Source: Dimorphilus gyrociliatus (taxonomy: Eukaryota; Animalia; Annelida). From it: a stretch of DNA of 64,000 nucleotides. The notes beneath the pieces were generated by a model, which saw only the letters and a list, made by a program, of their open reading frames with translations, searched no databases and had not been told where the DNA came from. Where the stretch lies: assembly GCA_904063045.1 (NCBI GenBank), contig CAJFCJ010000012.1, positions 682,001-746,000 on the forward strand, given 5' to 3'. Position 1 is the stretch's first letter. Each line of letters opens with the position of its first letter. The position numbers and the translations under genes are program-made. Of the stretch, positions 1,655 to 61,304 are shown piece by piece.

Positions 1655-1658
<4 letters not shown>

Positions 1659-1712
<54 letters not shown>
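1659..1712. repeat. (AG)n microsatellite, about 27 units
   Basis: Perfect AG run seen directly. It produces the spurious RERERE ORF 1566-1754. Confidence 0.95.
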
Positions 1713-1720
<8 letters not shown>

Positions 1721-2021
1721 TCAGAGAGAAGGGGAGGGTACAAGAGGAAAATAAGCAAAATAAAAAGCGAGAAAAAGAGACAAATAAATGAAAAAAGGGA
1801 TATAAGAACAAGAAAGGACTAAAGAAGAGAAAAACGTCTTGTACTGTTTAGTTCTACTCTTATATTTGCTTCCTCAAAAAACGACAAGTTTATGTTTTAG
1901 CTATTGAAAAAAAAATATGAGTGCGTTCCTTTTTTTTAAAAAAAAAAGAATGAAAATATTATGATTTTTTTAACGAATTTATTAAATTCTCCTTATCCAG
2001 GACCGCCTCGGGCTGCGTGGA

Positions 2022-5000: not shown

Positions 5001-5413
5001 TTGGAAAGAGATAAAATGCTTCGTAAACTAACTAATGGAACACCATCACCTCCGCCTAGTCCACCTCAATTAGTAACGGTTGGGGTAACAATGACTTCGC
5101 CAATCCTTAATAGAGCACCAATGTTATTTAATACCGCTGTTAGTGAAGCAACAACTCTCTCAAATACGGATTTAAGGAGTGGTACGATTAAACAATACTC
5201 TTTTCTATATATTCAAAAGTTCAATTAATTATTCTCTCTTTTTTTATTTATGCAAGGTCTACAGCAGGCTACGTCTAACAGCAGCAGCGCTTGTGGTCCT
5301 TTACAAAAGGTTGCACAGGTTTGTATAGAAAGAAAGGTCTTTATTCTAATACTAATTGACAAGTGTATCTAAATATTATATTACAGGTTTTAGAAGAGAA
5401 TATTTGGCAATAA
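2022..5413 (+). CDS. AMOT: Angiomotin-like protein (multi-exon)
   Basis: The N-terminus has PPPY (PPxY) and the angiomotin motif RQEPQGQE. The coiled coil KVAKLQQLEEEMARIKDEYDNLSRQNKKREHLERSVRLKLEDQLR resembles AMOT [45 protein letters not shown]. A later segment MQSLKQQLLERDKMLRKL resembles AMOT IKTLHAQIIEKDAMIKVL. Exons join in phase through GT-AG introns and end VLEENIWQ* at 5411-5413. A splice acceptor at 2000 means an upstream exon (UTR or coding) exists. Confidence 0.85.
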
Positions 5414-6014
5414 ACTTCAAATGAAAGTATAGGCCAAGCTTTCAACCAAAAACCAAATCGTCAGCAAAAATCAATCAGAAGCTAAAAGTTTAACCGAAAT
5501 ATTGAACCAAAACGTTGCTGGAGTTAGACGAAGTCTTTTCGAATATGATACTTCTTTTTTGCCTAGTTGACAGTTTTAGTATTAGAAAACTGGGATCTCT
5601 GTACTGCAAAAATACTGCACTTTTATTTGTATAGTAAAAGATAAAAAAAATGAATGAAAAAGTTAAAAAAAAGAAAATTCACAATACAGTGAAAAGTCTT
5701 TTTTGTACAAAAAGAAAGAAATGTTTTTAACATATTTTACACTGTATTGTTTATATTTTGTATGTAATTTCATATAAAAAAAGAGGAGGAAAGAAGGAAA
5801 AAACAATTTAATTAAACAAGAAGAACAAAGTTTAATAAATATATAGAAAAATTAAAGTTTTTATCATTTTTGAATTTTTCTTATAAATGAAAAAAGAAGT
5901 GAAAAAAGAGTAATTGAATACTTGAACGTTTTCAATGAATAATATAAATTTAGCAGTCTTTTAGACAGTTCTTTTTTTCTTTTTATATTTTTGGGAAAGT
6001 AACACAAAAAATAT

Positions 6015-6028
6015 GCAGTAGATGGCGC
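6015..6028 (+). promoter_or_regulatory. CTCF-like motif GCAGTAGATGGCGC
   Basis: Close match to the CTCF core CCASYAGRKGGCRS, located 2 bp beyond the LRRN-like stop codon between two convergent genes. Confidence 0.55.
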
Positions 6029-6030
6029 CT

Positions 6031-9000: not shown

Positions 9001-9595
9001 GAGTTATCACTCATTCGTAAAGTCCGTAAAATCGGCGTTCCCGTAAAAGCATCCTTCATCACTTCTTTAATTTGATTGTCGTTAATTTCAAATCTTTTCA
9101 AGGATGGCAGAAAACCAAGAAACGTTAAATATTCAAAGCGATTGAATGATAAATCAATCATTTCCAATTTTGATTGATTAACGCATAGGGATTCGATGAG
9201 GTTGTGAGCAGCATTAAATCTCTTTAAAGGAAAACTCTTGGCTTAGCTATAATGCATTGTTATATTTGATTTGATTTTTTTTACTTTACATTGTATCAAT
9301 GTTCTATTTTTTCCTGTTTTATTTACATATGAAATATAATAATGATGCTGTATATATATATATATATATATATACTGTATATAATATGTCAAGAGTATGC
9401 CTTTAAAGATTGCGGTAGATTGGTGACGTTTCTGATTGGCAAGCAATTTTCCAATTGCAGTACAGATTGCGGTAGATCTGGAATTCGCGAGAGACTTTTG
9501 CAGATAGCGTTCGTCGCGTTGCAGCGGCAGGAACTCGGACAATTTGCCGTTATTGTTCGAATTAGAATGCAAATGATTATTGTGTATTGCTTCAT
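6031..9595 (-). CDS. LRRN/NLRR-like receptor: signal peptide, LRRNT, LRRs, LRRCT, Ig, FN3, TM
   Basis: Exons about 9595-9401, 9236-8956, 8241-7765, 7484-7253, 6868-6528 and 6466-6031 join in frame. Features: signal peptide MKQYTIIICILIRTITA, LRRNT CPSSCRC, LRRs, LRRCT KLLCDCNNRW, Ig LNCRAIGDPSPTIVW, FN3 RPYMNSYTLHNLQPQTSYEICL (LRRN-like) and TM ILAAMIGSILGLVIVITFLVCV. The exon 1 donor is uncertain. Confidence 0.85.
8331..8346 (-). promoter_or_regulatory. CTCF-like motif (GGATAGATGGCGCTGA on minus strand)
   Basis: AGATGGCGC core in intron 2 of the LRRN-like gene. Confidence 0.4.
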
Positions 9596-11449
9596 TTGTG
9601 GATGGAGCTATTTAAATATAGTGATTATCTGAAAGAAAGCAGAAACATAAGTTAGAATATCATTTTCGATTATTCTATTTAATTCAGAAAAAATAATTGT
9701 AGTTTCTTTTATTAAAATATTAATCAATATGCTTAGCATGCAACAATAGAAAAAAGTAAACGTAATCTTATATATAGAAAAGGGGAGAAAAGTCCCTTTA
9801 ACCCGTATAAAGCTATATTTCCGTTTCCTGACTAGAAGGAGCTATATAGTATATTGATTTAGTCTACTAATGAAGTATGTAGAAAAATTTCTTCAGGTAC
9901 CTATTCCCTTTTTACTTCTATGAATGATGATAAATTCCGTTTTTTTAAATAATTTAAGGATATTTTTTATCTAGTTTACTGACAATTCCCACAGATTATC
10001 TGACCTTCTTAGAAAGTATGCAAAGCAAAGAATCATATCATCAAGAATCAATTGAAAAAAGTCATCTCTAATGTGCGATTTTTAGCTGACGTGGTCATAG
10101 AAAAAGGCTGATAGGCCCTTTTTTATCCTTTTTAAGGAATTTCCTTTGGAAAAAAAATTTCTTTTATACAATATAGCCAAAGAAGAAGGGAAGTATTTAG
10201 GGCATTTATTTTGAGAGTTAAAAAGGACGAATAGATATTAACAGACTGAAAAAAGAGAGAGAGAAAAAAGTATGTAAGTAAAGTGAGATAGGAAAGGAAA
10301 GAAGGGTAAAAGCGTTACTTTTTTATGCTTACTAAACCTTAAATTTTTTCTATCGATTTTAAAAAAAAATGATGAAAAGGAAATTCAGAGAAGGTTGTAT
10401 GTCTTTTTTCTAAAATATTCGTTTTACAAGTAATTCTGTTATTAAATTAGGCTTAATTGAAAACTATTACAAGCCACTTTCACAAAGTACGTCTTTTGCA
10501 TTTGAAGCAGGCTTTAGAATCATTTATAGTAAATTGATCATTAACACTAAAGCCCAAGCGCCTTATGTCTTCATCAAGAAGATTTCGATTTTTGACTTTA
10601 GTGCCATTTTGAGACTGTTTGATGAATAATTTGTTGGAAATTGCCTCTCACAAATCACTATATAATGCAAAAATTCCCGTAAAATAATCAAAACACATAC
10701 TCTTTTTGTTCTTTTGGTCGTTGAATAATTTTTTCTAAATATAAAGATAAAAGGCGAATATTCTAGAATATTTTCTCATTCAGCAGTAATATCAATTTCC
10801 TAGAAATTGTTTTGTTTTCGTTGATATGACCTCTTAAAAATTCATATAATTGTTTTCAAAGGCGTGCCGAAATGATCATTAGAGCGCTAAAGCTAACTTT
10901 TCATCATGTTCTCAAGGGTTTTATCTCTTTTCTTTCCTCTATTTCTCTTCAACTTTGAAAAAAGTCCGTTTCAAACAGTTGATCAAAGAACTTTTGTTAA
11001 TTACTTTTATTTTTCGTACTACTATGAAATAGTCAACATACCGCCACTGAAACTTTTCTCTTTCCATTATCCTTCTAACTGTTTAGCATTTATTTATACA
11101 AGTCTCGAGAATTTTTTATTCATAAATAAGACATGTGATAAAGATCTTCCTTTCTTCTTTCTCTTCAGCTATCTTATATAAGAATTTATGCTTTTGGGAG
11201 CAAAAGCGTATGAAATATTATATGAATGTTCTTTTTTCATCTTTTCTATCAGTATAGTCTCTCGAACTTTTTGATAACTTGAATAGGAGAGAGAGCAAAA
11301 ATGATTCGCTCCTTCTCCCTCTATCGCTCTCTTTCTCTTATCGCTTTTAAGTGGGTTTTAATGAAATAATTCAAACCTAATTAATAAGTTAACAAAGATC
11401 GATGAAAACTAATAAATTCGTAAAATCTGGGTCAAACCCATCCGTCAAA

Positions 11450-11650
11450 GGCGTCGTAGCTTAATGAATGATAAACGACCGTTCTATCGCTGTGGCACAA
11501 ACGTTTTATTTCGCCTTATTACGTCCGCAAGACTAGGTCACGTGACCAATTGCGGTATTGCAGCTTTTCTAGTAGCTGGCGGCAAAATGTCGCGATTTTT
11601 TACGATAGAGGCGCCGCATCAAAGTGAAACTATCGCCTCGGGAGGCCTCT
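11450..11650. promoter_or_regulatory. GC/CpG-enriched promoter-like island with palindromic E-box GTCACGTGAC followed by CCAAT
   Basis: GTCACGTGACCAAT near 11538-11551 and locally high CpG in an AT-rich background. Confidence 0.45.
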
Positions 11651-14600
11651 GATATATTTTTGGTCTCATAAATATTAAATAGGCGGAAAAAAATGGACAA
11701 AGTATTGGAATGGAATTGATGTTTTTTTTTCTGTATGCAAGATTTATAACAATATTCACGATATGTTGCCTGACATTCACAGATTTTGCAATAATATTAA
11801 TAAAATATAATAAACAGCTCAGTCGATTGAAACATTTACCTTGGATTATTTTCCGCTAGAATATTCGCAATAGAAACAGAACTATTTACATGCTATTCAT
11901 TAATATTCATAAACTAGATTAAAATTTCTCAGTATAAAACATCTATTGTATGAGAAAGGTTGATGGAAACTATTACGAATATAAGAGACAATGGCAGTTT
12001 AGAGAACTCATTTAAGTCAACCAATTGAAATAAACTATTGCTATTTCTATCAGAGAAGGGAGATGAACCCTTTCTTCCAAAAGGAATAGAATTGGAAGCA
12101 ATTTATTTCAACGTCCTGTCACTCTATCTACAATTATTCCTCCCTTCCTCAAGACTAAAACAATTTAGATATTTCTATTCTAATTAGGCTCCAGAATAAA
12201 TACAATAAATATTCATGAATATTAATTACTATTCAAATAATTAGTTAATCAGTAAAATTTTTCATTTTTATTGGTAAATTACGTAAAATTAAACTCAGTA
12301 TACACGCAAAGAAAGGATTAAGAATGAAAGGAGTATAATTGTAAATGACGTAAAGAATTTCGCTGTGATGTTGTAGTTTCTTTTTACTATAACTGTAACC
12401 ATTTTACCAAATAACAATTGCCATATATACACACACCGCATTTTTTGTAGTTACCGTATAGACTTTATTGCAAACTTTCATATTTTGTTTATATATAAAG
12501 ATATATATATATTGAAATATGTAAATAATAAATATTTTTTATAAGTAAACAATATTTTTTTATATCTATTTATATTCAGAATGAATTTTTTAGTGAGTTT
12601 TATATTGCAGTTGGGGGAATAAGATAAAAAAAAAAAGGCAATTTGGGCAAAAATCATTCGCTAGACCGATCCAAAGCTTTTTAATAATCTCTAGACAATA
12701 TATAGTAGCTTGTTGATTGGTTAACTCTGACATTTATATATGGTTTTGTAGGCACCCACTATTTTTAAATATATATAAATATATGTAAGATTATAAGTTT
12801 TGTTATGTTATACAAAATCATCTAGGTAAGTAAAAAGTTAAAATAAAGTCAATAGGTGAAGACACGGCTTAATGGAATTTCCTTTGATCTTGGATAAAAT
12901 AGCTGTTTACTTCCGTTTGCGTTCTTTTCATAATTAATATTACTTTAAGAAAGAATTTACAACAAAAAGTAGAAGAAATGGATTAAAGGTTAATTATTCT
13001 ATTAATTTTATCTTACAGTTTAAATAATCTTGAGTTTTAGCCTATAAATAAGAATATCGGGCAAACAAGCCAAAGAATAGAAGTCAATTTGGTCTAAATA
13101 ACTCGCTAGCTTGACCCTAGAGCCCATAATCGTGTTCTCCATAGTGGGCAGTAGTACTTTTTTTTTAGAGTGTTATACTTTCTATACAAAAAAAATAAGC
13201 GTCTCTTGTCGTAAATGAAAAAAGAGAAAAAGTATTCTTATGGGAGGAGATTTGGATGTAAAACCTGTGTCAAATTAATTTTGTCCTTATGTTATTCAAA
13301 ACCAAGGTAATTTTTTCCTTTTAAGCGGTAATTTTCAGTTTCCTTTGTAATGAAAAAGGATCTCTTCCTTTGCACAATAAATACAACATTTTACTCCCGA
13401 TAGACTAGCAATTTTAGGCGTTCATCTCCTTCAAATACAACTGTGTATAGTAATATCCTAATTTTGAAGATGCAAGTATTATATTCCAATCGAAGTTTTC
13501 CGTCAAAAAGTCAGTCAATACATCACGTTCTACGAGTCAAGAGAGTTCACTTTATTCGATTAGAAAGCTAATTCGTTTAGTCACTTGTTTATATACGTTT
13601 TTCTGCAATCGATTTCCAGAAGGATTATAGCGATTGGGAGCAGGTAGAAATGCCTCGCAGATGTTGTTTTTTTTTATATATTTATAGTAGCAATTCCATG
13701 TACGCTTGTTGCTATGACTACTGAGACGAGGGCTTAATGCATTCGGGTGAAGATGGAAATAACAAGGGACGAGTGAACGTGATAGTAATGTGTTAAGATA
13801 CGTTATCATTACCTTAAGAAAATATAACTTGTAAAGTTTTCAAAGTAGAAAGGAGTGCGATAAAAGATTTAGAACACATATAAAATATTTGTATACGAGT
13901 AAACGTAAATGCAAAAGAGGAAGAGAAAGAATAAAAGAGAATAAGAGAAGGAGGGAGAAAAAGAGTGTGAGTGACTTGGTGAGTGAGTGTGTGTGTGAGA
14001 GAGAGAGAGAGAAAGAAAAGCAGAGAGGGAGTAAGGCAAATTGTAAAAGGTATTGCGCACACGATACAAACTATAAAAATATCACAGCTAAACTAGTACG
14101 AAAAACAAAATAATTTACGTAACAAACAAATAAACAATATAGTGAACCAGATTAACTCCATTTATGGATATTTAAAGTTATGAATAGTAAATGGTTCTAC
14201 TAAAATGAAAATCGTGGAGTACATTACATACTCTTTTAATACATTACATTATTGATAAATATGCGAGGCGTTAAGTGAATATGACATGCAGTGGCAAGAA
14301 AGTCGAAATTAATCAGATTGATTGCAGTTTTCTCTAGTATTTTTCTTTTTCTTTCCAGATGTTATTCTTTCAAATAGCTTTTTTTTTGTTACTTTTCAAT
14401 TAGCGTGTTTTTATATCATTCTAATAGGAATAATAAAAGATTTTTAAGCCTTTCTCACTAAGAAATTTTAATAGTGACATAGAAATCAATTTTAATTAAA
14501 TCTAAACTTATTGCATGCACTTTTGCCGATTATACAGGAGAGAAACCATGTGCGTAAGAATAAACTTTTCTTGAAGGCACTTTCGATGGCAAAAAAGCAT

Positions 14601-15470
14601 TATGGGAGTTATTAGAGAAGATAGTTTAAGTTTTTTAGTAAAAAAAGAAATACAACTAGAAGACTTTGTTCAATTATTCATAGTCTCATCACTCTATGTC
14701 AATAGACTGAGATTGATATGGTTATATAATATAAATAGCCGAAGAGTAATATTTAAGCAGTCACTATTAAAAGTATAGATACCAGTATAGTGTTAACTAA
14801 GAGAAGGAAAAAGAGGGAAAAAGAGGAATAGATATGTATACAAATAGATATAAATATATGATCAGACTAAAATTTCTTTGAGAAAGTGCAAAGAAAAATA
14901 TATAAATTTTATTATGTTTTTTCAGCTTGTTATATATACTCTTTAAATGACATATAAATATGTTCACCAAGACACTAATTAGCTTTTTATTTGATATTTT
15001 GTAGATGTAGAAACCTTTCTTTTCATTTAAAAACACAACCATATACAAGTTAAAAAAAAGAATGACAAAAACTATTAATTATCAAATATTCTATATTAAT
15101 CGCATGTTAATTTTTCTATTCCTTCCGCATAGTTTAGATCGGGGTTAATTGATCAATTTATTTTGTATAAATATAGGTCAAGAGGAGATAAACATAAAGT
15201 AAACTAACAGCTTTATTATTGCAACCTTTGAGCTTGTCTCCTTTTACCCGATTACCATCGTAAAAGTTAATGAAACTACACATAATTTTCAATTTTTTCC
15301 TATACTTTGATAAATGACTTTTTAAGCTAATAACTTAGTCCAGACTATGAATTTTTATTAAATAAAATGTTAAGCACCTGTAAATATTATATTTTTTAAT
15401 CGATATAGGTTAAATGCTATCTGTTGGGAATGCTGCAAATTTTTTCTCTTGCTCTCTCCCTCTCTCCCTT

Positions 15471-15503
<33 letters not shown>

Positions 15504-16077
15504 TTTCCTCCCTCCCTCCTTCTTTTTTTTTATCTATCCTGTTTTTTACAGATTTCGTTGTTTTTTCAAAAACAAAGACTACGTTTGAAGAGTGAAAAGC
15601 TGATTACATTTTGAAAATTTTACCAAATTGTTATAAATAAACAATAATAATTCAACTGACAATAGTGAAGTAACAACAGCACTTGATTTTAATCACTAGA
15701 ATGATATTTATCCTCTATTTTTTTCACTTCATTTCTCTTATTTTCTCAACTCCTACTACCTCTCTATTCTCTATCAACACGACGTATAACTGATTTAATG
15801 CTAAAATCTAAGAGAATCAAGCCTTAAGTAGCTGAGTATGTCGGAGTTTAAGAGTAAACTAAGAGATGATTAAGTGTAAAGGTTTTCTTTCGCTGACAGA
15901 AGGATGAAATATTCGGTATTTACTACAAATTTTTATAATTCAACAAAAAAGTAACACGAATATGTATAGGAAGCTGCTATTAATCTATATAAATCACCTT
16001 AGAGACATTTTCTGTTAATACTAATCAACGCGAAATATGGCAATATTACCCAGATATAGCATGGTATGTGTGGTATA

Positions 16078-16080
<3 letters not shown>

Positions 16081-16115
<35 letters not shown>
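16081..16115. repeat. (TA)n microsatellite
   Basis: Perfect TA run seen directly. Confidence 0.95.
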
Positions 16116-16118
<3 letters not shown>

Positions 16119-17378
16119 ATTTTCATAATATACAGTCCTATAAAAATTATACCAGTTTGCATAGAGGTCAAGAAAATATCATAATCCAAAAATACTTTTC
16201 TTAGATTTTAAGGAAATTCCACTTCCGTTTTCAGTATGGAGAAAATAGTGTAAACAATATTTATTATTCTATTAAACAAATCAATTCCAGAAATTTGATA
16301 AAAATCACAAATTTCTCTTCCAATTATTCTTGACTTGTAAATGGTAAAGAATAATTATTTGCAAAATTGATTATCAATCTTTTCCCTGTTGTACCAATGA
16401 ATAAAAAATCTATTGGAATGTTCTATTCAGCGATTACGTAAATTCCTTAACGTCTTGATTTATTACCTTCTTATTTATTCAAGTTAATGTCTACTATCTT
16501 CCATCAATCATAGTAGAAATTCGTAAGATGAGGCATGGGTAAAAAGTAAATAACCTGTAATTCGTCTAGACACACCATATCTAATTAACCAGTTAAAGTC
16601 ATTAGAAACCTATGTTATTTTAGCGCAGCTGACCGAATCTTTAGCGAAGAATGATAAACTTTGGATTTGGTATTAGTATAAACCTACTTTGGCATAAAGT
16701 AGGGAAAAAGTCTTATAATAACTGTAATTCCATGAAGTATATTATGCAGTAAATTCTCTTTTTGTCTTTCTTTCATTCTCTCTTTTTATTTAAAAGAATA
16801 GAAACATTCCTTCGGCGTAAAAATATATCGGAATCTTTATTGATTTTGTAGCAAAAGGAGAAAAAGAAGACTTTTTCTTTCTCTTTCTCTTTCTCTATCT
16901 GTCTCTCTTTGCCCGTCTGTTTTTCTATCTATCTGTCTCCTTCTCTCTCTCTCTCTCTCTCTTTCTGTCTCACTCTCTCTAACCTTGTACTTTATATTTT
17001 TTAACGGATAATACACGTAATACAAATAAACAAATATAAGAGAATAAAAGGAATTTTTCCCTTAATTAAGCTTTCTCATTTACTTAAAAAAGATAAAAAC
17101 TTTTCTCCTCCCAATTGAAAAAGATAGCGAAGGGAGAAGAAAGATTTTATTCCCTTTCTTTCTTTTTTATCAGAGTTTTATATTCCTTCAGAAATGTATA
17201 AACCGAAAAAGAGTTTAAATAATAAAAAGGAACGTTATCGAAAACTTTATACATACTTGATTAAAGAAATTATTGATCCGTGTACAACACGATTAGACAA
17301 ATAGCGAAGATGGAAGAAGATACGCGTTTCATCGAATTTCATCTATGACGTCTCTGATCGGAAAGGCTTGTTATAGTT

Positions 17379-18853
17379 TAGCGCCGCCTAGAGAGAGAAT
17401 GGCTTATACGTCTCTGAATCTAATACAATTGCCCTATAAACCATCTCTTCTCCTTATTTATATTTATGATAAAAAAGAAGAGAGAATTGAAAAGAAAATA
17501 TCCCTAAATATTTATTGAATATCGAAAGTTTGAAAAACAGTGATTTAAATGAATGGAATATTTAATTTTTCAATAAATATATTAGCGTTAGATATAAAAG
17601 TAAATTTTTTAGCCTAAATCTGCTCATAAATATTCATAAACTTGTCTAATATATCAAAAGTATACCTAACGCCATCTACTGAATCAAATTACACAGTCTC
17701 TCTGAGTTTTCTTGCGAGTGAAATGTCATAGGGGTATGGTATTGTATAATATTCCTTAAGCATTATACATTTCAAGCCACTTGATATATAATATCTATAG
17801 TTAAGATGAATTTACAATAGCTACACTCCTAAATTCAACATCAAAAGGCTGGTTAGGGAGAGCCTATAACTTTTTATTCTTTCAGGAAATCATACAAACC
17901 TTAGATATTGAAGCCTTATCAGTATTCATACATAATCATAATAGTATTTCTCATGAAATATTATAGAAAAAAACCAAAAAACACTTTTGTATATATTTTC
18001 ATCAGTATTAAGGTAAAGATATGTTTAAAAATAGCAAATAAAAGTTCTAGGAGATTACTCTCCGGATAATCCCTATTTTAATCAATCTCTAAGGAAAGAG
18101 GGTGATTTTACGTAGTGAGTAAAAACCTTTCCCAAGGCCATTTAAAAGTACTTGGAAAGAATATAAATAGTAATATATGTCCATATTATCTCTATCTTTT
18201 CTCTCACCTTCTTCCCTATTTTCTTCGTTATCTTTCATTCCTATTGTTAGAGCAACATTTCCATCTTACTTTTAGTGTTTCTATAAAGTAAATTCTATAT
18301 ATTCTTTTTGAAACATATTAAGGTAATCAAGGATGAAAGGGAGTAGACGTCCAAATATGGATTTTTGATATTGAAGCATTAATAATGTCTTCTTTTATTG
18401 TAATAGAATTACAGGCAGAGAATAAAGAAATTTACATATTTCTTTAGTATAATCCTATTCCATCTTTGAATAGTTATAAGCTTTACTTTATCCAAGTATA
18501 CATTCATGTTATTTTTTATATTAATATTAATCAATATATCACTTTTATTCTTTATTGTTTACTTTGTATAAAAGATATTTGTACGGTGTGGATTTAGGCA
18601 TCTGTTTTTCACAAAATATATATGTGTTTTAAAGAGATATAAACAAAAATAATATATGTTATTTACAACTCTTTTAATACCCTTTTCTTTACCGATAAAT
18701 CTAAACTTTATGAAGCCTTTTCTTGATTTATTAACGTTCTAACCTTGTTAACCTTTTAACACTTTTAACCTTTATATAAGCATTATAAAAATTTTTCCAT
18801 AAATAATATTCTGTTTATTAAAATAATGTTAAAGTTAGTACCGCCATCTGTTA
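17379..18853 (-). promoter_or_regulatory. Three minus-orientation CTCF-like motifs (17379-17393, 17668-17682, 18839-18853)
   Basis: Reverse complements are CTCTAGGCGGCGCTA, TCAGTAGATGGCGT and CTAACAGATGGCGGTA. The last also fits a YY1 site. Confidence 0.45.
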
Positions 18854-42200: not shown

Positions 42201-45200
42201 TTATGTTCTATGACATCAGTAGATTGCTAAATTAATCGTGTTGGCCAGACACCATTGGCTTTCAAATATATACTTGATGCTTGGGGAATAATCATTCACG
42301 GATTAAAAATTCACTGACAAATAACGTTGAATAGTTCCAACGTGTTGTTAATGCAGTTTAACATAAAAGTGATGTGCTGTATATAATGGAATTTTAAGCG
42401 ATGTTCTATTTAATAAATGTGAATAATTTTTAACTCTTTGTTTAATAGAGTCGTCATCAGAGGAAGACGAGGTATTCGACCGAAAATCTCCTCCAAAAGA
42501 AAATAGAAAATGTATGATATTAGTATATATATTTTATATATATTTCAATTGTATAAAATTTACTTATAAAAATAGCAAATTCTGGTCATCATCCTCGCCA
42601 TAATTACGTAAATATGGCTGGGAGCTCTGCTCAGACAGCTTTATCTCAAATAATGCAACAATGTATGTATAAGCTCCATTAACACTCTTTGGTTATTATG
42701 ATAAAATTTCTAATTATTAGCAACTCCACCGCAAATACCGCCTATAACAGATCCTATAGAGTCAGGTATGTAGATATATATAAACATATACAAACCTTTA
42801 TATGGAAAGGGAATCTCCAATGAAAACTTGCGCTCTTTCGCACTCTTTGAATATTGCACTTTATTCTCACATTGATTTACTAAATGTGTAAGCTGTCAAA
42901 AATTATAAAGTCGCATGGGACTTTTAAGCAGTTACATTCTGTGTATAATGATTTACTCCCTTCTCCAATAACAAATAACTTTGTTTGTCGAACATTCTGA
43001 AAGCCAAGATATTACTTACCACTTATTTAGCTAAAAAGAGCAATAAGTTCATTGGAATTCCTCTAAACTCGAATAACAGCTTCAATTCAAAAATCTAATG
43101 CTTTTTTCGTTCGCTTTCACAACGCCAACTTGTTCGGTATGTTTATGTGTTGAAATACTATGCATGCTTGTTGTATTATATGAAACAAAATCCTCCTTGC
43201 CTCTGTTTTCTTCAAAACTAAAATGAAAACATATAGCGGAAGAATCACAACCATCTTCTTGCCCATCAGAATCACCTCCTTCCCCTCCTTCGAAAAATAT
43301 AGGAGATACTGATCGTCCTGAGTCTCCCCAGCAACAGCCACTTTATGAAAACACTCGGCCAGTAAAAGTGTTGGAACATCATTCTCAATTATCTAGACCG
43401 AAAGAGCGAGAGGAACGTCCTGTTCCGGCTCCAAGAAGAATAAACGAATCATCTTCTCCAGATAATTTAAGTGGTGGAGCTGGTGCTGCCGCTTTAGCTA
43501 GTTCAGGAGTTGCCTACGCACAATTAGAACGTCCTACTGATTTATCAGAGAAGAAAAGAGAGAAAAGAAGAAGAAATCAATTGCGATCAATTGACGAGGC
43601 TAAAGATCTAAACTCTTTAACATCTTCTGCGTCGTCTAGTCCGAGAAATATAAGCGTATTGCCGGTCACCTCTCTTATGCAAGCTAAGCAGCAAGTAGCT
43701 GATGTTGTTCAGGATTCAACTCCAAGAAGTTCAGGTGAATGGTCTCTTAATAACACTGCTAGAGCAGATGATTTTTTTAAGTATTTCGCTTGCCCCTTAA
43801 ATCGGAATGTATATTGGTTATCCCAAACCTCTTTCCAAATTCAAACGTTCTTAACTAAGAGCTTAAGATAATGTTAAACGTTGGTTGTTTGCTTTATAAT
43901 TACCTACAGCCCTCAAATCAAGCGTTAACTCTTGTAATATCTCAGAAGTAGGAAATGTTATTTCAAATTGATTTTCTAGGTACCACTTCGTTTGACAGTA
44001 CCTCTCTTCTGAGTAAATGTTTCAAAACTTATGTCCATTAATAGGAAGGGTTGCACTGTCTAAAAAGCGCTCAACTTTTGGTTTTATACTTCTCCGATTC
44101 CTGCTTCCTTTAAATTTATATTAGATTGATATGTCTACACTTTTGTGGCTCAGCCGTAAACATAACCGAAATTTAAACTCTTAGCTTGCTCTTTATCACT
44201 TGAAAAGTAATTTTAAGATGCTAGATGATTTTTCTTAATTTATAACACCCTCATTTGTAGTAAATTAATAAAGATATCATGCACCATGGCTAACTTGTCT
44301 CATCAAAACATTTAACTCTAGCCTTTTTAACATAAATTCTTTAACTAATAAACAAATGTAATAAACTTTTTATGTTATGTTAAAATAGTCCTACAAGCAT
44401 CACAACCCCCTGATGTTACTAATAATACAAGCTCAGCCGGAAGTGGAAGATTAGCTCCCCATCTGTCTTCAGTTCGAGGTGTCCCAAATCTTGATTTAGA
44501 AAGTGGAGACGGTAATTGAAAATTTTTTTCTCTTTAAGATTTTCAATCAAACTAATTCGTCTTTCTTTAACGTACTAGTTTTGAAATTAAGCAGAATTTC
44601 ATCGAAAATTCAAAATTTGTGTGAAACTCTAAAGGTGAGTTTGCATGAGAGTCGAGCTATATAAAGTACATATTCGAAAGTTGTAAGATTATTTTCAGGC
44701 CAAGATATTAATGTAACAAATGATAATAGTATAAATAAAAAAATAAATTATTACTCGGAAAAATTCACCGCAATGAGATCAATCCCTACCTTGTACATAG
44801 GCGAAATAGATTTATAATAAGACAAAAATATTTTAGAAGCCAAAGCGTCGCCCTTTACCCGACTACTTTATAGATGAGGATGAGGCAGTTTTAGAACGTA
44901 AGTAACACGAAACCGATTTCATTGTATTCATAAAACAACAGCGACCGAAACGTAGAGACGTTACTGAATTCTTTAAAGACGAAGATGATTTGGAGAGTAA
45001 GAACATCTTTATCTGTTATTGTTCTAATTTTGCAATGCTGCTTATGTAATCATTGAAAGAGTATAAATTGACCGAAATGACTTTTTTCTGAAAACAGTTA
45101 ATGTTTCAAAACCATCTCTATTTTATTGATATGAAAACAACCTACTATATGCATGCTAACACTTTCGATTTCTATATTTCTCTTATATTACAAGAGTCTC

Positions 45201-48200
45201 TGCGTTGAGGATGTTGTTATAAAGAATGCTGAATATTTTATAGCACGATTTATCTTTGTGCAGCAATTTTTCAATTTGTTTCAATTATATAGCTCCAGCA
45301 TTAGATCCGACTGCACCCAAACCTGACGGACCGCAAGTTATTCCAATAGAAGGAAATCAGCTCATTGTACCTTCAAGTTTACAAAGGAGAAACTTAGAGT
45401 CATCACTTCATCGATATGGAACGGGAATGCCAAAAACTACTGCCATTAGTGTTCTAGATAGCAGTGGAAGGGCTTTCGGCACCATAACCTATGGTATGTA
45501 TTTGTTATCCATTTATCTACTTGATTTAATTATTTAATAACTTCATAAACAGGAAAATTACTTACTAGAGTCAACAAATTAGCTTACAATCTTTTGCGAA
45601 TTGGTTCAAAATCGAATCCTTTACTTAAACCAGAAGACACAGTTGCCCTTGTTTATCCGAACAACGATGCACTTTCATTTATTTGTGCCTTCTATGCTTG
45701 CTTGACGGCAAACTTAGTTCCAGTTCCAATCGAAGTTCCGTTGTCGAAGCGAGACGCTGGTTGTCAGAATATAGGATTTCTACTTGGTAGTCTAAATGTT
45801 AAAGTTGCAATTACTTCGGATGCTTGTCACAAAGGATTGCCTAAAAATCCAAACGGTGAAGTGATAACATTCAGAGGCTGGCCTAGACTGCATTGGTTTG
45901 TCTCAGAACATTTAAGTAAACCTGGTAAAGACTGGAATCCACCTGCAAGATTGCAAGATCACGCTCCAGCTTATATTGAAGTAAGATAATTTTAATAGTC
46001 TTTTATTTGCTATAATTTCATAGTATTCTTTATCTTCTTAGTATACACACGATAAAGATGGAAGTGTCCTTGGTGTTACTCACACAAGAGCATCAATGTT
46101 AGCACACTGTAGAGCCTTATCGGTTGCAGCAAACTACACTGAAGGTAGTGATGAAAGTTAAAGTTATTACTGCGAAATAGTTAACGCTTAATTCTATTTT
46201 GCAGGTGAAACAATGGTCTGCGTTTTAGATTTTAAAAGAGATCTTGGTTTATGGCATTCAGTTTTGACTGTGAGTTAAAAATGATTATATTTGATGTTCA
46301 ATTGCAAATTATTTTAAATATTTCAGAGTATATATAATGGAATGCACGTTATTTTTATTCCATATCAATTAATGAAATCTGATCCAGCTTCCTGGTTGAA
46401 GATGGTCACTAAATATAAAGGTATGATTTTAGTAATTATAAAAATTAGCAATTTGTTTTTTAATTTAATTTTGATTTTTTACAGCAACTATTGCTCTAGT
46501 TAAATCTAGAGATATGCATTGGGCATTACTGGCAACCAAGGATCATAAAGATATTAATTTACAATCTCTTAGATTTTTACTGGTTGCTGATGGATCAAAT
46601 CCATGTTAGATATAGATTTATACTAATTAATATAAATCTAAATATATTTTTTCTATAGGGTCTCTAACTTCCTGCGATTCTTTCACGAAGCATTTTTCAA
46701 GATATAATTTGAAAGAAGAAGCCGTTTGTCCGTCGGGTAGTAGCCCCGAAGCGTTAACTATTTGCATGAGACGCCCCTCTAGATCGGAAAGTTCATCATC
46801 GAATAGTAATACAACTGGTAGGGGAGTACTATCGATGAAAGGGCTATCGCATGGCGTTGTTAGAGTGGATAGTGATAGTAGTTATACTTCGCTAGCATTA
46901 CAAGATTGCGGCGTTATTTTAGATGGAGCTTCTTTGGCTATTGTATCTATTGATAATCAGCCAATTTTATGTAAAGCTGACGAAGTCGGTGAGCTCTGCA
47001 TTTCCGCGCCATACACAGCTCACTCTTACTGGGGACTTTCTGGAAAATCATCTAAAACTTTTGAAGTAGTACCCCTTTTAGAAGATGGAACACCTGCGGT
47101 TCCAAATCAAAAATTTGTCAGATCTGGTGCGTATTTATAAAAACATTCTTTAAAGCGGCTAATAAGTTTTCTTCATTTTTAGGATTGCTCGGTTTTGTTG
47201 GTCCTGAAGCCTTAATATTTGTCTGTGGTAGCAGAGATGGATTAATGACTGTCGGAAATCGAAGGCATAATACTGATGATATTATAGCAACAGTATTAGC
47301 TGTAACTCCTGCCCAAGGAAATTTTATATACAGAGGACGAATTGCCGTCTTTTCTATCAGAGTTTTAAGGGATGAGAGAATAGTGATAGTAGCAGAACAA
47401 AAACCTGATGCTAATGAAGACGAGGTATAGTTAAACATTTGCTTCTTCAAAATTGTTAGCTAATTATTAATATACATATACTCAAAACAGAGCTTTAAAT
47501 GGATGAGCCAGGTTCTCCAAGCCGTCGATGCAATTCATAATGTCGGAGTATACTGTCTTGCTTTAGTTCCAGCTAATTGCCTACCGAAAGTAAGATTTAG
47601 AACAAATAACATTTATTATTATAAAGGTCACTTCTAATCAACAAAATTTAGACTGCACTGGGGGGTATTCATGTCCACGAGACAAGAAGACGATTCATTG
47701 ATGGAAATTTGCATCCAGCATGTGTACTTATGTCTCCTCACACTTGTGTTACAAACTTGCCGAAACCGAGAGAGCATCATCCTGGTAAGTTTTATTTCCC
47801 TCTGCATGCATTTATTCAAAATGTTTAATGCTGTGATTTTAAATTTTTTACATATATTCCTCTTCAGACGGTATATTTCTGTGTTATCTGTCAAGTTTAG
47901 AAAGTTATTGTCAAAGTGGAACCACCTTTATTTTTTGTTCTAATAATTTTTTCCTTTTCGAGATATTAGTATTCTAGTAGTCCTATATTTTTTGATAATA
48001 CTATATTTTCAAGCTTTTATAAAACCTTATAAATTGAGAGTTTATAAGAAACAGTTTTGTCTGTTGTTCAAATCTTTATGATCTTATTTTAATATTTTGA
48101 TATTACTTTCAGATGTCGGACCTTCAGCAATGTTTGTAGGAAATATTGTTCAGGGTGCTCGACTTGCTCAAGCCCAGGGCAGAGAATTACCTAAGGAAGA

Positions 48201-50352
48201 CGATAACTCAACTAATGTAATTGTTTTTAAATTGTATAATTTTTCATATGAGTAATATTTTTAAAATTTTTAGAATTTCCTATCTGAAATCCTGCGAAAT
48301 CGTGCTCAGCAACATCCGGACCATGTACTCTTTACTTTAAAAACTTCTAAGAACGACTCAGAAAAGTTAACTTGCTCTCAACTTCACAAAAAAGCGGAGA
48401 GAATCGCTTGTGTTTTAACAGACAAGAATAAATTAGTAGCTACCGATTTAGTTGCGTTAATGTTTCATCCAGGAATTGATCTAATAGCCTCATTCTATGG
48501 CTGTTTATACGCTGGTGTCGTTCCTGTTGTTGTTAGGCCACCTAACGAACGTAACATTCCAACCACACTCCCTACAGCAAAAATGGTAGTGGAGGTCTCT
48601 AAATCTAAGCTTTTGTTGACAAATGGTGCCGTAGTCAAACTATTAAGGTCAAAGGAGGCATCATCTGTTGTAAATGTTAAACAATGGCCACCCATAGTTG
48701 ATGTCGATGATTTAGCAAAAAAGAGAGTGTCTTCGGTTTATCGTGCACCAAGCAATGAATTAACTTGCTACGTTGATTTTTCGGTGTCGACTACTGGTAT
48801 GTTAGCTGGAGTTAAAATTTCTCATGGAGCAGCATCTAGTCTGTGCAGAGCAATCAAATTGCAATGCGAATTATATCCAGCAAGAGAAGTTTGCATCTGT
48901 TTAGACCCGTACTGCGGTCTAGGATTAGTCCTGTGGTGTTTGTCAAGGTACCAAAATCATTGAATATCTAAACGTGCCGAGCATAAATATTTACTTCTTT
49001 CCCTTCAGTATTTATTCTGGCCATCGATCTATTTTGATACCGCCTTCCGAAATTGAGCATTCGCCGCAGCTCTGGATGACAGCATTAAGCCAAAATCAAA
49101 GTAAATTGAATCTATTTATTGTCCTTTGAGTGAAATTTTAAAATCTGCTAACATTACTTTGTAGTTCGCGATACGTTCTGTTCGTATGGAGTTATGGATT
49201 TGTGTACTAAAGGTCTCGGTGGCCCATCAAATACGATTCAAACAATGATAAAGCACGGCGTTAATTTATCGTCTGTCCGAACAATGTGTGTTATTGCGGA
49301 AGAACGACCCCGCATTAAGCTAATGTCTGCATTCACTGCTCTATTCTCTGCGCTTAAATTGAATCCAAGAGCAGTTAGCACAAGTTTTGGTTGTAGAGTT
49401 AACGTGGGTGTAAATCTTCAAGGAGCTTCTAGTCCAGACCCTACACAGGTGTATGTTGATTTGAAAGCCTTGAGAAACGATAGGGTGGCTTTAGTTGAGA
49501 AGGGCAGTCCACACTCTCTCTGCGTTCTTGAATCGGCTAAACTATTACCAGGTGTAAAGGTTGTTATCGCTAATCCTGAAACAAAGGGACAATGCGCAGA
49601 CTCCCACTTAGGAGAGGTAAGATTTATCAGTACAATTTTCTTCTTTATCACTATCTGCGTTTTCATTAAACAGATTTGGGTATCAAGCCCTCATAATTCC
49701 TCTGGATATACTGTTATTCAAGGAGATATTCAAGAAGGGGCAATTCACACAGATCATTTCGAATCGAAATTAGCTACTGGTGACGTTTATACAACATTTG
49801 CTCGAACTGGATATTTAGGATTTGTGAAAAGAACGGAGATGACACAAAGTGATGGAGGTAAGTTATAAAGGAAATAGTACCTTACTATTAAACCCAATCA
49901 AATATTTTGTTTTTCCACAGAACGCCACGACGCACTCTTTGTTCTTGGAAGCTTAGAAGAAACGCTTATCATGAGGGGAATGCGCTATCACCCTATCGAT
50001 ATAGAAGAAAGTATATTGAGATGCCATCGAAAGATATGCGAATGGTATAGTATTGTTTTATTTGCTAAGATAACGTCTTATCGGCAAATTTTTTTCTAGC
50101 GCCGTATTTACCTGGACCAATCTACTAGTCGTAGTAGCTGAATTAGATGGACAAGAAAACGAGGCAATAGACTTAGTACCCTTAATCACTAATGCTGTTT
50201 TAGAAGAACACTATTTAATTGTTGGAGTTGTTGTGATTGTTGATCCGGGAGTGGTACCAATTAATTCCAGGGGTGAAAAGCAACGCATGCATTTGCGTGA
50301 TGGATTTTTAAATGATCAATTAGATCCAATCTATGTCAGTTATAATATGTGA
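38112..50352 (+). CDS. DIP2: Disco-interacting protein 2 (DMAP1-binding domain plus two AMP-binding/FACL-like domains), about 25 exons
   Basis: LAELDLELSE|GDITQKGYDKKK, RYHS|EIRQEAV, PPDVT, SSKIQNLCETLK|KPKRRPL, LPKTALGGIHVHETRRRF-type segment, HTCVTNLPKPR, TSFGCRVN, and the C-terminus LDPIYVSYNM* (stop 50350-50352). The constitutive introns are GT-AG and in phase. Confidence 0.95.
39183..39233. repeat. (AT)n run ending in the perfect 24-bp palindrome TATATACTGTATATACAGTATATA
   Basis: Seen directly. It contains back-to-back TACTGTA and TACAGTA units. Confidence 0.9.
40484..40498 (+). other. Candidate 15-nt DIP2 microexon (adds GDQHG)
   Basis: ttcag|GCGACCAGCATGGAG|gtatgagt. Phase 1 to phase 1, open frame. 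Confidence 0.6.
44837..44897 (+). other. DIP2 mutually exclusive exon A (KPKRRPLPDYFIDEDEAVLE)
   Basis: ttttag|...|gtaagt, 61 nt, phase 0 to phase 1. Confidence 0.8.
44942..44996 (+). other. DIP2 mutually exclusive exon B (RPKRRDVTEFFKDEDDLE)
   Basis: caacag|...|gtaaga, 55 nt, phase 0 to phase 1, homologous to exon A. Confidence 0.8.
47868..47870 (+). other. Candidate 3-nt DIP2 microexon (adds one Asp)
   Basis: cctcttcag|ACG|gtatat inside an unusually long (329 nt) intron. Confidence 0.45.
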
Positions 50353-56817: not shown

Positions 56818-58554
56818 CTATACTCTGTTGAAATTATCTGTTCTATCAGATTTAAGAGAACCGTTCATTCTGGTTGTTTCTGAGACATAAGGATCTCTTG
56901 AAAAGTGAGAACCTTGGGAATACGGTCCATACGATTGATAACAATATTTACAAAGTTTTGTAATTAATTCCAAAACTTCAGCCAATGTTAAAACGCTAAT
57001 TCCAACCCATAGACCTAACTGTCCACCAACGTCAGACAGCAATTGACTTTGACTATAATCTTCAGCTTCAACAGTTTTTACAACGTTAGCGTCTGCAATA
57101 TAAACGTTTATTCTGGAAAAATCTTTCATGGCTTCAAAACGATTTTCAGGGCCAAAATATTTCGAGTACACTTTATTTTTCTCCGCGTCTTCAGATGTTT
57201 TGAAACGTTCGGGATAACCTTCAACTTCAGTTATGTCAACATAGGCCTCTTCACCGTCAAAAGAAGTTGCGGGCCATTTAGCAAGAGAATATGTAACATC
57301 ATACGTGAGTTCTCTGCAAGGAGGGAAACAACCACACATTCTCATCTTTGTTGCATTTCTTGTTACTTCAGCCGTTACATTTCTAGCGCACATAACTCTT
57401 TTGAACATACTTTTCATCGCATTCCAACATATGTCACTGGATGAATTTCGACAAAATTCTGGCAGATCATCGTCTACAGTACACATTTTACTGTTATTCA
57501 AGTACTTTTCATGATCCGGTAAATAAGGCGAGATGCATCCGCATCTCGCAACTACTTGTTCTTGAACACATTTCTTTTGACAAGTAATCAGTCTATACGG
57601 AGCGCCTCGACTATCAAATGGGTCTTCCGCTGTGCAATTGCCGTGGGGCGGTCCAATACGAAGATTGTCTCGTGCTTTTACTGCAAGGCTAACAGAAGCC
57701 CCTGGAGGTATGTCGAAGCCCTCCGTATGGGGATAGGGCTGAGTAAATGGTCTATGAATAACTATTCTGACACCCTCAGAGGATGACATTGGACTTAACC
57801 ATTCATGAGTTCCCGGGATTACCCTTGGATTTTTATTTACTTCTAACATTCCAGAACCAGTAAGAACAGTCGTACTCCACCCGTTTTCAATTCCTTCCGC
57901 CAATGTAGCTTCCGGATGATCCGGTAATGGTGCATTATAAGTAAAACAATTATAATAATAATGATCAAAGAATTGGCGAAATTCTTTTTCTCTATCGCAT
58001 TCAATACCCCCAAATCGACAAGTGACTATAAACTCTTTGAAAGGTACTCCCGCTTTTTCAACTAGCTTCCTTTCGATATTCGTAGCGATAGACGTTCTTG
58101 TTAAGATTGCTGAGAAAACTTTGCTCGCTCCTTTATCATAATTCTTTTGCAAGGTTAAAAAATATTTTGAGACAACTTTCATATATTCATTTATAAAAGG
58201 ATCGTCTGATACATTCAACCAATGAACCGGCAGTATATTGGTGACATTAATAAACACTCTATTAAGTTTGTTAAGTATCATAATATCGAGATTTCTCATG
58301 TTACACAGACTTATCGATGGAAAAGAGACGGCTGAAGGAACAATCTCGACAGTTACTTTTTTCGGATATGAGTAGTATTTGTGTAATAATTGATAAAATT
58401 GCATTCCGAACATAGATACTGCAGCTGCACACATTATCAACCAAAAGCCTTTTGCAGCCTTCGATCTTGTCTGTATAACTTTTGGAAAGCCATGCATAGT
58501 TGTCGTCCTCGCAAATTTTTGCATAATTGTATTGTACTTCCGGTTGGGCCTCAT
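56818..58554 (-). CDS. FaNaC: DEG/ENaC channel of the FMRFamide-gated (FaNaC) family, intronless CDS
   Basis: 578-aa ORF with TTMHG, TM1, KYYSYPKKVTVEIVPSAVSFPSISLCNMRNLD and FFDHYYYNCFTY (FaNaC-type), a Cys-rich thumb, and TM2 QLLSDVGGQLGLWVGIS. A splice acceptor lies about 19 nt upstream of the ATG, so a 5' UTR exon lies further right. Confidence 0.93.
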   Translation of the reverse strand: MRPNRKYNTIMQKFARTTTMHGFPKVIQTRSKAAKGFWLIMCAAAVSMFGMQFYQLLHKYYSYPKKVTVEIVPSAVSFPSISLCNMRNLDIMILNKLNRVFINVTNILPVHWLNVSDDPFINEYMKVVSKYFLTLQKNYDKGASKVFSAILTRTSIATNIERKLVEKAGVPFKEFIVTCRFGGIECDREKEFRQFFDHYYYNCFTYNAPLPDHPEATLAEGIENGWSTTVLTGSGMLEVNKNPRVIPGTHEWLSPMSSSEGVRIVIHRPFTQPYPHTEGFDIPPGASVSLAVKARDNLRIGPPHGNCTAEDPFDSRGAPYRLITCQKKCVQEQVVARCGCISPYLPDHEKYLNNSKMCTVDDDLPEFCRNSSSDICWNAMKSMFKRVMCARNVTAEVTRNATKMRMCGCFPPCRELTYDVTYSLAKWPATSFDGEEAYVDITEVEGYPERFKTSEDAEKNKVYSKYFGPENRFEAMKDFSRINVYIADANVVKTVEAEDYSQSQLLSDVGGQLGLWVGISVLTLAEVLELITKLCKYCYQSYGPYSQGSHFSRDPYVSETTRMNGSLKSDRTDNFNRV

Positions 58555-61304
58555 ATTTTTTTTCTTTTTTTTCTGTTAAAATAAATTGTAACAAAGTGAT
58601 GATTATTCAATAGAAAATTACTGAAGTGGAAAAAATCTTTCGTATTTGGTTTGCATATATAACATTTGATGAACTATTATGTACGAGTGTTTTCTTATGT
58701 AGAAACAATCGATACTTTTCAATCTAACAAACAGCAAGAAAACATATTTACTTCTGCCAACTTGTATTGATATGGGTCCTTTATTCGGATTACTATACAT
58801 TTTGTAATAAGATCTGGGAGAAAGTTTCCTTTGAGTGTATAAAAAGAACCGAAGAAGGGACTTATTTTTGAAAGGAACAAGAAGACTACCCCTCAGTAAT
58901 TGTATATTAATAAAAAATTCCACGTACAATAACTAACATTTACTAGCACTTATGTCCCTTTTTATTTATTTGTTGATTTAAGATTATAAATAATATTTAC
59001 TATAGTTATTTGTGTAGAGAGTCTTCTTTTTTCTTGCTTTGTTTTTTCCCTTCATTCTACTTTTTTAGTTTGGGAAATTATTGAGAGAGCTATATAAATA
59101 TATTCTAACCGTAAAAATAAGTTGATAATCTATTACGTTCGCAATAAAAATTACATAACTCTTATACGCAATCCATAAGATTGCTACTTCATCAGAGGAG
59201 CTTGCCTAATGCACTTTTTCGCTGTTATTTTTTTTTCTTTTCTCTCCTGTCTTCTACCTCATCGTTTTCTCTGTTCTTTTTTCTGTCTGTCTCTATCTCT
59301 GTCATTCTTTGTCTCTGATTATTGCAAATAATATTGATTGCGGTATCGGTTGTATACTGATCAAATACGACAAAAATTGATCGATATTACATGTATAGTT
59401 ATTTATATATGGTTCTTCTTTCCTGTTAGATATCTACAAATAATCTCATTCAGATTTACTAGAACTCGGTTAAAAACTCCTGATTTCGATACAAAAGTCA
59501 AATACTGTCTTGAGAGAGTACATTAAAAAGAATAGTTTGCGTTACGGGATTCTAATTGACAAAAAGCCAGAATAAATTGACCATTTCCTTAAATTTATTT
59601 GTAATCTATTCGTAAATTTGGTTTATTGTATTTTTTCACGTTATTAATAAGATGATTAGATAAATAAATTGATATCCTCAATCTTTTATTGGGCTTTGTA
59701 ATGCTATAGCAGAAACTATTACCGATGCAAATATTAATATCTATATATATACATATTTATATATATATATAATATTCTAATATATTAGAACAAGCGAAGA
59801 CAAATTTTTAGAAAAATAGAAAAAATGTAACCAAAGTTGGAACTTGGCTCTTGGTAAAAAAATTTATGGTCTATTTATTAATAAATCCTCATTACGTTAA
59901 TTAACACGAATTCAGGAGCGTTAACTTAATTAGGTGTTTTTTATTAAGTCAAAGATTTTCCGCACAAGTAATTAAAGTGATTATCATCAGTTGTATTGTA
60001 ATATAAATAATATAAATACTAATCAAGCGTTAATAAATGGAAAAGTATTAAAGATCAATTCTGTTAGTAACAATGATAAATAACTTGAATATTTCGCAGA
60101 AAAAGAGAGAGAGAGAGAGAGGAAGAGGAAGACCAAAAAAATTTCCAATAGAGAAGTAAATTTTTGATGAAATTTAAATGTTTTGTTCAGTAAGGTTTAA
60201 GTTCAGTTTGACTATTTATCTAAGTCATTTCCTGTAATTTGATCTACTTTCTTATTCCAAGTGCATCTAGTACGTGGAGAAATTAAGGAGAGAGAAGAAT
60301 GAAAGAGAGAATAAAAAAGAGAGTAAGATAGAGACAGGTGAGAAGGAGGGAAGAGAGAAAGAGAGAGATGTGGAGTTTATTTTTATAGGTGAGAAAGAAT
60401 ATAATGAATATATTATTTAAGTTATTTTTAAGTATACCAAGTTAAGAGAAATGTGTTTCAAGACTGATGATAATTAAAATATATCCAAGTATATAGTGAT
60501 TATTTTCTGTAATTAACAAGTTCCTGCTGGTGTTCTTACAGTGGCATTAATTCAATACAAAGAACATATCATTTGACTTATTTTCTTGTCTTTTTACATA
60601 AATATAATATTATTTTTAGGATTTGTTTTTCATCCTGATCACCTGGTCATAGTTTTACAAGTCTCTTGTCCTTTTCTTTAGTATCATGGGTTTTACCATG
60701 TAAATTTCAATAAGTGATTAAATCTCTCTAACAATATATCTATAATTGACGTTTATACGCATAATTAATATATTTAACACATACCATTTCTAATTTGCAC
60801 ACTTAATTTCATTTTCTCACTATTCCACATGGTCGTAATGCAATCAGAAACCCAATTAACTTTTATTAACATTCTAACTACACGACTACTCATTAAATTT
60901 ATTTACTCAAAATTGACAGCTATTATAAACCATAAACTTTAAAATTATTTACAGTCACGAATGGGAACGAGTTAGCAGTTGCAAGATGCGTGAAAAGAGT
61001 AATTTTATATTTTTCATCCTAGAGAGCAGTTTACATAATGGTCTTTTCCTTTAAGAAAGAACGTACGTTCAGAGAAAATAGATAGGAAACGAGAAAGAAA
61101 GAAAAATAACAGAAAGAGGGAAAAGAGTAACGCAACGACTGATTTCTCTTCAAGAAAAACCATATTTCCCTAAGCAACTAGACCATTTCTCTTTGAACTT
61201 GATCTTTAGATTTAGTTTAGTGAGATGGAACAATGAAAATTATAATGAGACGGCATCGTGTAGAATATTCTTGTTTTTTACACTATTACAATACTACAGT
61301 GAGA

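Follow-up and report, generated by a model that had tools for sequence, protein, structure and literature searches.

Steric hindrance keeps exons 2 and 3 of alpha-tropomyosin mutually exclusive, and tandem homologous alternative exons are also found in Dscam1 and 14-3-3 xi. Catalogues of tandem-duplicated clusters of mutually exclusive exons exist for human and for Drosophila (Hatje et al. 2017, PMC5740500; Kassiopeia, PMC3923563). Exons are classed there as mutually exclusive when no reads join them to each other, unless their joint inclusion shifts the frame, and a pair belongs to the steric class when the distance from donor to branch point is below 50 bp (PMC5740500). We analysed a 64-kb stretch of Dimorphilus gyrociliatus DNA (hereafter the window) in which an earlier note had placed two adjacent exons with homologous peptides, here called A and B, within a DIP2 gene; every coordinate that it gave was correct. 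Our reading, to which we assign a probability of roughly 0.8, is that an ancestral exon was duplicated in tandem and that both copies were kept as mutually exclusive alternatives, giving two DIP2 isoforms. The pair is a standard case of tandem-duplicated mutually exclusive exons of the frame-shift class, possibly of the steric class as well.

Like the catalogued clusters (PMC5740500, PMC3923563), the two exons are adjacent, similar in length and identical in phase, they encode homologous peptides, their lengths are not divisible by three, and one appears to be the major exon and the other a regulated one. The frame does shift on joint inclusion here, so the pair would qualify whether or not reads joined A to B. 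Unlike the catalogued clusters, the DIP2 duplication is young and restricted to a single small lineage of annelids, and unlike the human mutually exclusive regions, 87% of which lie in secondary-structure elements (PMC5740500), the exchange in DIP2 concerns a probably disordered linker. The likeness to alpha-tropomyosin lies in the position of the branch point of B, which would be very near the donor of A (spacer of 44-47 nt); the difference is that introns of 54-67 nt are routine in this animal, so that the margin is small, and that the frame shift provides an independent safeguard. With Dscam1 and 14-3-3 xi the locus shares conserved intron elements close to the exons, but it has two exons only and we found no significant or conserved competing pairing. 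Our search found no literature on mutually exclusive exons in DIP2, and DIP2 is absent from the main texts of PMC9741552 and PMC5740500. The mechanism is known and its use in DIP2 is apparently undescribed; taken alone, the pair is nothing out of the ordinary, and it offers a clean, recent example of how, in a compact genome, two tandem copies of an exon come to be used in a mutually exclusive way.

Two homologous exons and the reading frame of DIP2

The gene lies on the forward strand of the window and spans about 39.98 to 50.35 kb. Pfam searches carried out exon by exon detected PF06464 (DMAP_binding), PF00501 (AMP-binding, on several exons) and PF23024 (AMP-dom_DIP2-like), and these domains, on neighbouring exons, confirmed the gene as DIP2, in agreement with the earlier note. 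The order of the domains is the one expected for DIP2: a DMAP1-binding domain, two adenylate-forming (FAAL-like) domains and a DIP2-type C-terminal AMP domain. The exon at 45552-45977 showed 50-67% identity to DIP2 orthologues; no sequence match to solved structures was found for this exon, and no match came from a word search in which the downstream exon (45295-45492) served as query. The features of the alternative region are collected in Table 1.

Table 1. Features of the alternative region of DIP2 (positions in the window; L004 is a related genome described below)
Feature	Position	Strand	Description
Upstream constitutive exon	44578-44634	+	ends ..KIQNLCETLK, phase 0; common donor for A or B
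Intron preceding exon A	44635-44836	+	202 nt; poorly conserved (41% identity to L004) save for its final ~20 nt
Exon A	44837-44897	+	61 nt; KPKRRPLPDYFIDEDEAVLE and 1 further nt; DIP2 motif with its near-invariant Pro-Leu
Spacer between A and B	44898-44941	+	44 nt, GT..AG; 47 nt in L004, sequence diverged
Exon B	44942-44996	+	55 nt; RPKRRDVTEFFKDEDDLE and 1 further nt; Asp-Val-Thr for Pro-Leu-x; two residues shorter
Intron following exon B	44997-45292	+	296 nt; three conserved blocks
Conserved intron block 1	44997-45050	+	from alignment to L004
Conserved intron block 2	~45145-45165	+	TGCATG at 45150-45155, then CTAAC
Conserved intron block 3	45185-45230	+	85-95% identity to L004; CAAGAGTCTCTGCGTTGAGGATGTTGTTA
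Downstream constitutive exon	45293-45493	+	phase 1; ..PALDPTAPKPDG..; common acceptor

The homology of the two exons was examined by comparing the peptide of exon A with all six frames of the window. Exon B was the top non-self match, with a BLOSUM62 local score of 50, while the 99.9th percentile of the 31,968 background windows was 27. The likeness of A and B is far above chance expectation. Of 20 aligned residues, 10 are identical, at a nucleotide divergence of ~35%. Both exons are entered in phase 0 and left in phase 1, so each is compatible with both flanks, and local joining of either A or B to the downstream exon gave an open frame that reads through. Since the length of each exon is 1 mod 3, joint inclusion and joint skipping both break the frame, as the earlier note had stated. 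Inclusion of A together with B leads to a stop five codons into B (..LEPTET*), and skipping of both leads to LQH*, with the stop four codons into the next exon. Exclusivity at the level of the protein is guaranteed by the exon lengths. Joint inclusion and joint skipping each create a premature stop, and such truncated messages would probably be degraded by NMD.

The splice sites of both exons had been described as strong. This was correct for the donors, which are consensus (GTAAGT for A and GTAAGA for B), and not for the acceptors, which stand at the weak end of the range of the gene, with pyrimidine fractions of 0.35 (A) and 0.50 (B) in comparison with 0.40-0.75 for its other introns. Pyrimidine-poor acceptors are common in regulated exons. 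The proposal that the spacer is shorter than the constitutive introns was borne out: transcript contigs over 42400-48300 supported 14 constitutive introns, which measure 54-67 nt plus one of 333 nt, and the spacer is below every one of them and 10 nt under the shortest (54). The observed sizes agree with the published median intron of 66 bp in Dimorphilus gyrociliatus (PMC7854359). Given the 44 nt of the spacer, the distance between the donor of A and the branch point of B is at most ~33 nt, and direct splicing of A to B would probably be hindered in a manner similar to that of alpha-tropomyosin. With a margin of only 10 nt, and with a spliceosome that in this animal has adapted to short introns (PMC7854359), a steric block can be proposed only tentatively.

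Two further observations concern the introns of this gene. An intron of ~650 nt (43735-44386) stands among introns of mostly 54-67 nt, and a low-depth contig of set X4 (see below) lies inside it, starting from 44108. Inside the 333-nt intron (between 47784 and 48113) the three letters ACG at 47868-47870 are flanked by ..cag and gt.., and the contigs of sets X3 and X4 contain 8 extra letters (ACG + ACGTT) between 47784 and 48118, which fits the inclusion of a 3-nt microexon together with a diverged exon start.

Transcript contigs joining the alternative exons to constitutive exons

The RNA evidence consisted of assembled transcript contigs, not of raw reads. Matches to the locus occur in marine and coral metatranscriptomes. 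A coral metatranscriptome (X1) was 100% identical to the window, presumably because it derives from the same species, and its coverage was thin. One X1 contig of 248 nt joined 44387-44510, 44578-44634 and exon A; the joint from 44510 to 44578 was present in X3 and X4 as well. X3 and X4 carry different organism labels (A and B, respectively), and their differences from the window are practically identical. They are one taxon, ~8% diverged in exons from the window, and the labels are perhaps two names or lineages within one species complex. In X4, a close relative with exons ~92% identical to those of the window, a 4387-nt contig contained the joint from 44897 to 45293, with GT..AG borders and a depth of 262. 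In X3 two contigs end at 44897 and 44996, and behind both ends stand 30 identical letters that match the beginning of the exon at 45293. Its upstream contig stops exactly at 44634 and its 4210-nt main contig begins exactly at 45293; the upstream contig of X4 likewise stops exactly at 44634. The graph in X3 has the shape that a bubble with two branches would leave in an assembly at k=31.

The joints that the earlier note had named as a check were in part recovered: 44634 to A in X1, A to 45293 in X4 and X3, and B to 45293 in X3. Among the 15 of 22 joints listed, none led from 44634 to 44942 (upstream exon to B) and none from 44897 to 44942 (A to B). The junction of exon B was seen in the close relative only, and the window's own species, with its thin metatranscriptome coverage, showed A only. 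No coverage of B was detected in X1, in X2 or in the spliced contigs of X4. Since B is absent from the spliced contigs of X4, which represents the same taxon as X3, it may be rare or condition-specific.

X3 had no intronic coverage, and its bin-mean depths could therefore be converted to branch depths. By rough contig arithmetic these were ~19.3 for A and ~6.6 for B, with a sum of 25.9 in comparison with 26.3 for the upstream exon. In the 44567-44763 bin, a model with exclusive exons, in which both branches overlap the upstream exon, came within 1-3% of the observed value, whereas a model with B placed behind A was 11% low. Rough as this arithmetic is, the X3 depths point to exclusive use of the two exons, with roughly one message in four containing B.

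These depths bear on an alternative in which exon A would in effect be constitutive and B a 'poison' exon behind it, which would tune the level of DIP2 by NMD and would yield no alternative peptide. Poison exons are often highly conserved at the nucleotide level, and B is very highly conserved; the stop that appears early in B when it follows A, and the lack of B in the spliced contigs of X4, also agree with such a role. However, the X3 depths agree with alternative use of A and B and do not suit an exon B that is nested behind A. B also keeps the family motif in its own frame, it is as close to the single-copy orthologous exons as A is, despite the ~35% divergence from A, and both changes that it shows against the related genome are synonymous in the frame of the motif. 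We consider a poison exon unlikely. We prefer the reading in which the mature message would contain A or B, never both, between the exon ending at 44634 and the exon starting at 45293, with A as the apparent major form and B as a regulated minor form.

Conservation of the exons and of the following intron

When the exon 45552-45977 was used in a word search, an ORF of 98% identity was recovered from a Logan contig of 18.6 kb that belongs to a related genome (L004, SRR23372228). Positions 1-18073 of this contig are collinear with 37.7-55.6 kb of the window, including the genes that flank DIP2, at 70-88% nucleotide identity. A further contig, L047 (SRR23372231; P0228 cluster), carries the same sequence as L004, so the comparison covers two genomes. 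Exon A was 95.1% and exon B 96.4% identical to L004, which makes them the two best-conserved exons of the gene; the values were 80-93% for other exons, 41-68% for introns and 62% for the spacer. Exon A differs by three substitutions and exon B by two, all five of them synonymous and at third positions. Only 5 of 38 codons are changed in A and B together, whereas the constitutive exons on either side have changes in 97 of their 227 codons (Fisher p=5e-4). Both alternative exons show extra constraint at synonymous sites. Such constraint is typical of regulated alternative exons. The splice sites of both exons are kept in both species, and the comparison indicates that both exons are under strong purifying selection.

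The same comparison weighs on whether exon B might be a decaying or unused relic of the duplication whose splicing is noise. The poor pyrimidine tract at its acceptor and the lack of B coverage in X1, X2 and X4 would be compatible with this, but B carries only 2 differences in its 55 nt while introns differ at 32-59% of sites, and at intron-like divergence the probability of two or fewer differences is below 1e-7. Its splice sites are retained and conserved intron blocks follow it, and in X3 its junction to 45293 occurs in about a quarter of the messages. Because of the 96.4% identity, the synonymous-only changes and this probability, exon B does not appear to be a relic, an explanation that we strongly disfavour. 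The earlier note had held that use of one exon only, with decay of the other, would speak against its proposal; what we found was a conserved exon B that is spliced to 45293 in the close relative. Its further claim of two DIP2 isoforms that differ just before the first AMP-binding domain gains support from the selection acting on both exons, from the contigs reaching 45293 and from the X3 depths.

Three blocks of the intron after exon B are conserved as well, and no other intron block in the region is as conserved as the one at 45185-45230. It was examined as a possible third, decayed copy of the exon and this was rejected: none of its frames resembles the motif (stop-to-stop ORFs), and apart from A and B themselves the top six-frame matches to the peptide of exon A lie elsewhere. 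The TGCATG of the second block is located 154 nt after exon B; L004 has TGCATG followed by CTAAT at 7247-7257, and the + strand of the 64-kb window contains just 8 copies of the hexamer. From sequence alone, the TGCATG/CTAAC element may be an Rbfox-type enhancer or, alternatively, a distant branch point. The choice between A and B would probably be steered by the conserved blocks after B, one of them with UGCAUG.

Exclusivity could also be brought about by competing RNA pairings between a docking site and selectors, and not by spacer length and frame. The block at 45185-45230 contains TGTTGTTA, which can pair with A-rich stretches just upstream of A (44811-44820) and just upstream of B (44931-40). 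These pairings are, however, AU-rich, measure 7-10 bp and are retained in L004 only in part. Shuffles gave duplexes as good as the best ones that the regions upstream of A and B form with the intron after B in the window (fractions 0.50 and 0.33), and folding of the entire alternative region was likewise no better than that of shuffles (z=+1.04). Conserved mutually exclusive pairings of the docking-site and selector type were not found among the duplexes examined, and we judge this mechanism to be very unlikely; the frame, probably helped by the short spacer, is our preferred basis for exclusivity. A perfect 11-nt inverted repeat (44654-44664 / 45285-45295) brackets the exon cluster, its second arm overlapping the downstream acceptor. 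It was not retained as a functional element: L004 lacks conservation of the first arm, by our estimate chance alone would yield about 0.5 such pairs, and the repeat is probably fortuitous.

Age of the duplication and the motif that is exchanged

The match of both peptides to a conserved DIP2 segment, given in the earlier note, was confirmed, and the segment was found once in every orthologue examined (~120 proteins), directly after KIQQLLNTLK. None of these proteins, which include many annotated isoforms (wasps, stick insects, crickets, termites, Schistosoma, cuttlefish), varies at the segment. The DIP2 of the window is thus similar to that of other animals (PMC12055004) in the order of its domains and in the motif that follows KIQQLLNTLK, and differs from those examined, which are single-copy and have no isoform differing at the segment. 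The annelids Capitella, Owenia and Ridgeia have a single small exon with the same borders, counted in Capitella as 58 nt running from phase 0 to phase 1, and their next-best six-frame scores of 26-31 equal background. The bdelloid rotifer Didymodactylos has the same separate small phase 0-to-1 exon in single copy, in Hymenolepis the segment is fused to neighbouring exons, and among 39 metagenome DIP2 loci those that hold the segment have it in single copy. A degenerate DNA pattern for exon B gave no match in the JGI metagenomes. The search of other DIP2 genes that the earlier note had suggested revealed no such pair in the orthologues and loci just described.

When A or B was compared with the single-copy exons of other species, 8-14 identities were counted, and A and B share 10 of 20 with each other. 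Since A and B are each about as similar to the single exons as to each other, the duplication is old in comparison with the split of the window's species from L004. The distribution points to a lineage-specific event, confined to the lineage of the window's species, in which the ancestral small DIP2 exon (58 nt, phase 0 to 1) would have been duplicated in tandem.

We then considered what the exchange would change in the protein. In an alignment of 47 DIP2 proteins the Pro-Lys of a basic cluster is invariant, and conservation is at least 90% for the Pro-Leu that follows (P28, L29) as well as for one Glu and one Asp. Exon A retains the Pro-Leu, whereas exon B has Asp-Val-Thr instead and retains the Glu-Phe-Phe; in its own frame B reads RPKRR..EFF.DEDD.LE. 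Residues 183-805 of the Capitella orthologue, a construct that omits the other DIP2 domains, were modelled with AlphaFold on the basis of the 47-protein alignment; pLDDT was below 50 for residues 1-44, the segment included, and confidence was high from the next exon onward. According to this model the downstream exon (45293-45493) begins the confidently folded first adenylation-like domain, and the segment is probably a conserved short linear motif in a disordered linker outside the fold. In the published nomenclature (PMC12055004) this linker would lie between DBD1 and FLD1, ahead of FLD2.

Exchange of the two exons would thus swap a linear motif made of a basic cluster, Pro-Leu-x-Glu-Phe-Phe and an acidic tail, at a site that is probably a disordered linker running from the DMAP1-binding domain to the first fatty-acyl-AMP-ligase-like domain. 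Isoform B would lose the near-invariant Pro-Leu and gain a Thr three residues after an Arg (R-x-x-T), which we mention, as speculation, as a possible basophilic-kinase site. A pair of isoforms that differ only in the motif, both under selection, marks the motif as functionally important and provides a natural comparison of peptide A with peptide B for the DIP2 linker. DIP2 regulates diacylglycerol pools and lipid signalling as well as neuronal morphology. A more specific proposal is that the swap acts as a regulated switch on a DIP2 docking motif, with the spacer kept just under the minimum intron size; we hold this to be possible but doubtful. If it were true, B would change partner binding, localisation or the control of FAAL-like domain 1 in certain cells only; in view of the UGCAUG that is conserved downstream of exon B, these may be neurons.

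Outside DIP2, the minus strand of the window contains at 56821-58575 a stop-free frame of 585 residues without introns, which by eye resembles an amiloride-sensitive (DEG/ENaC-type) channel.
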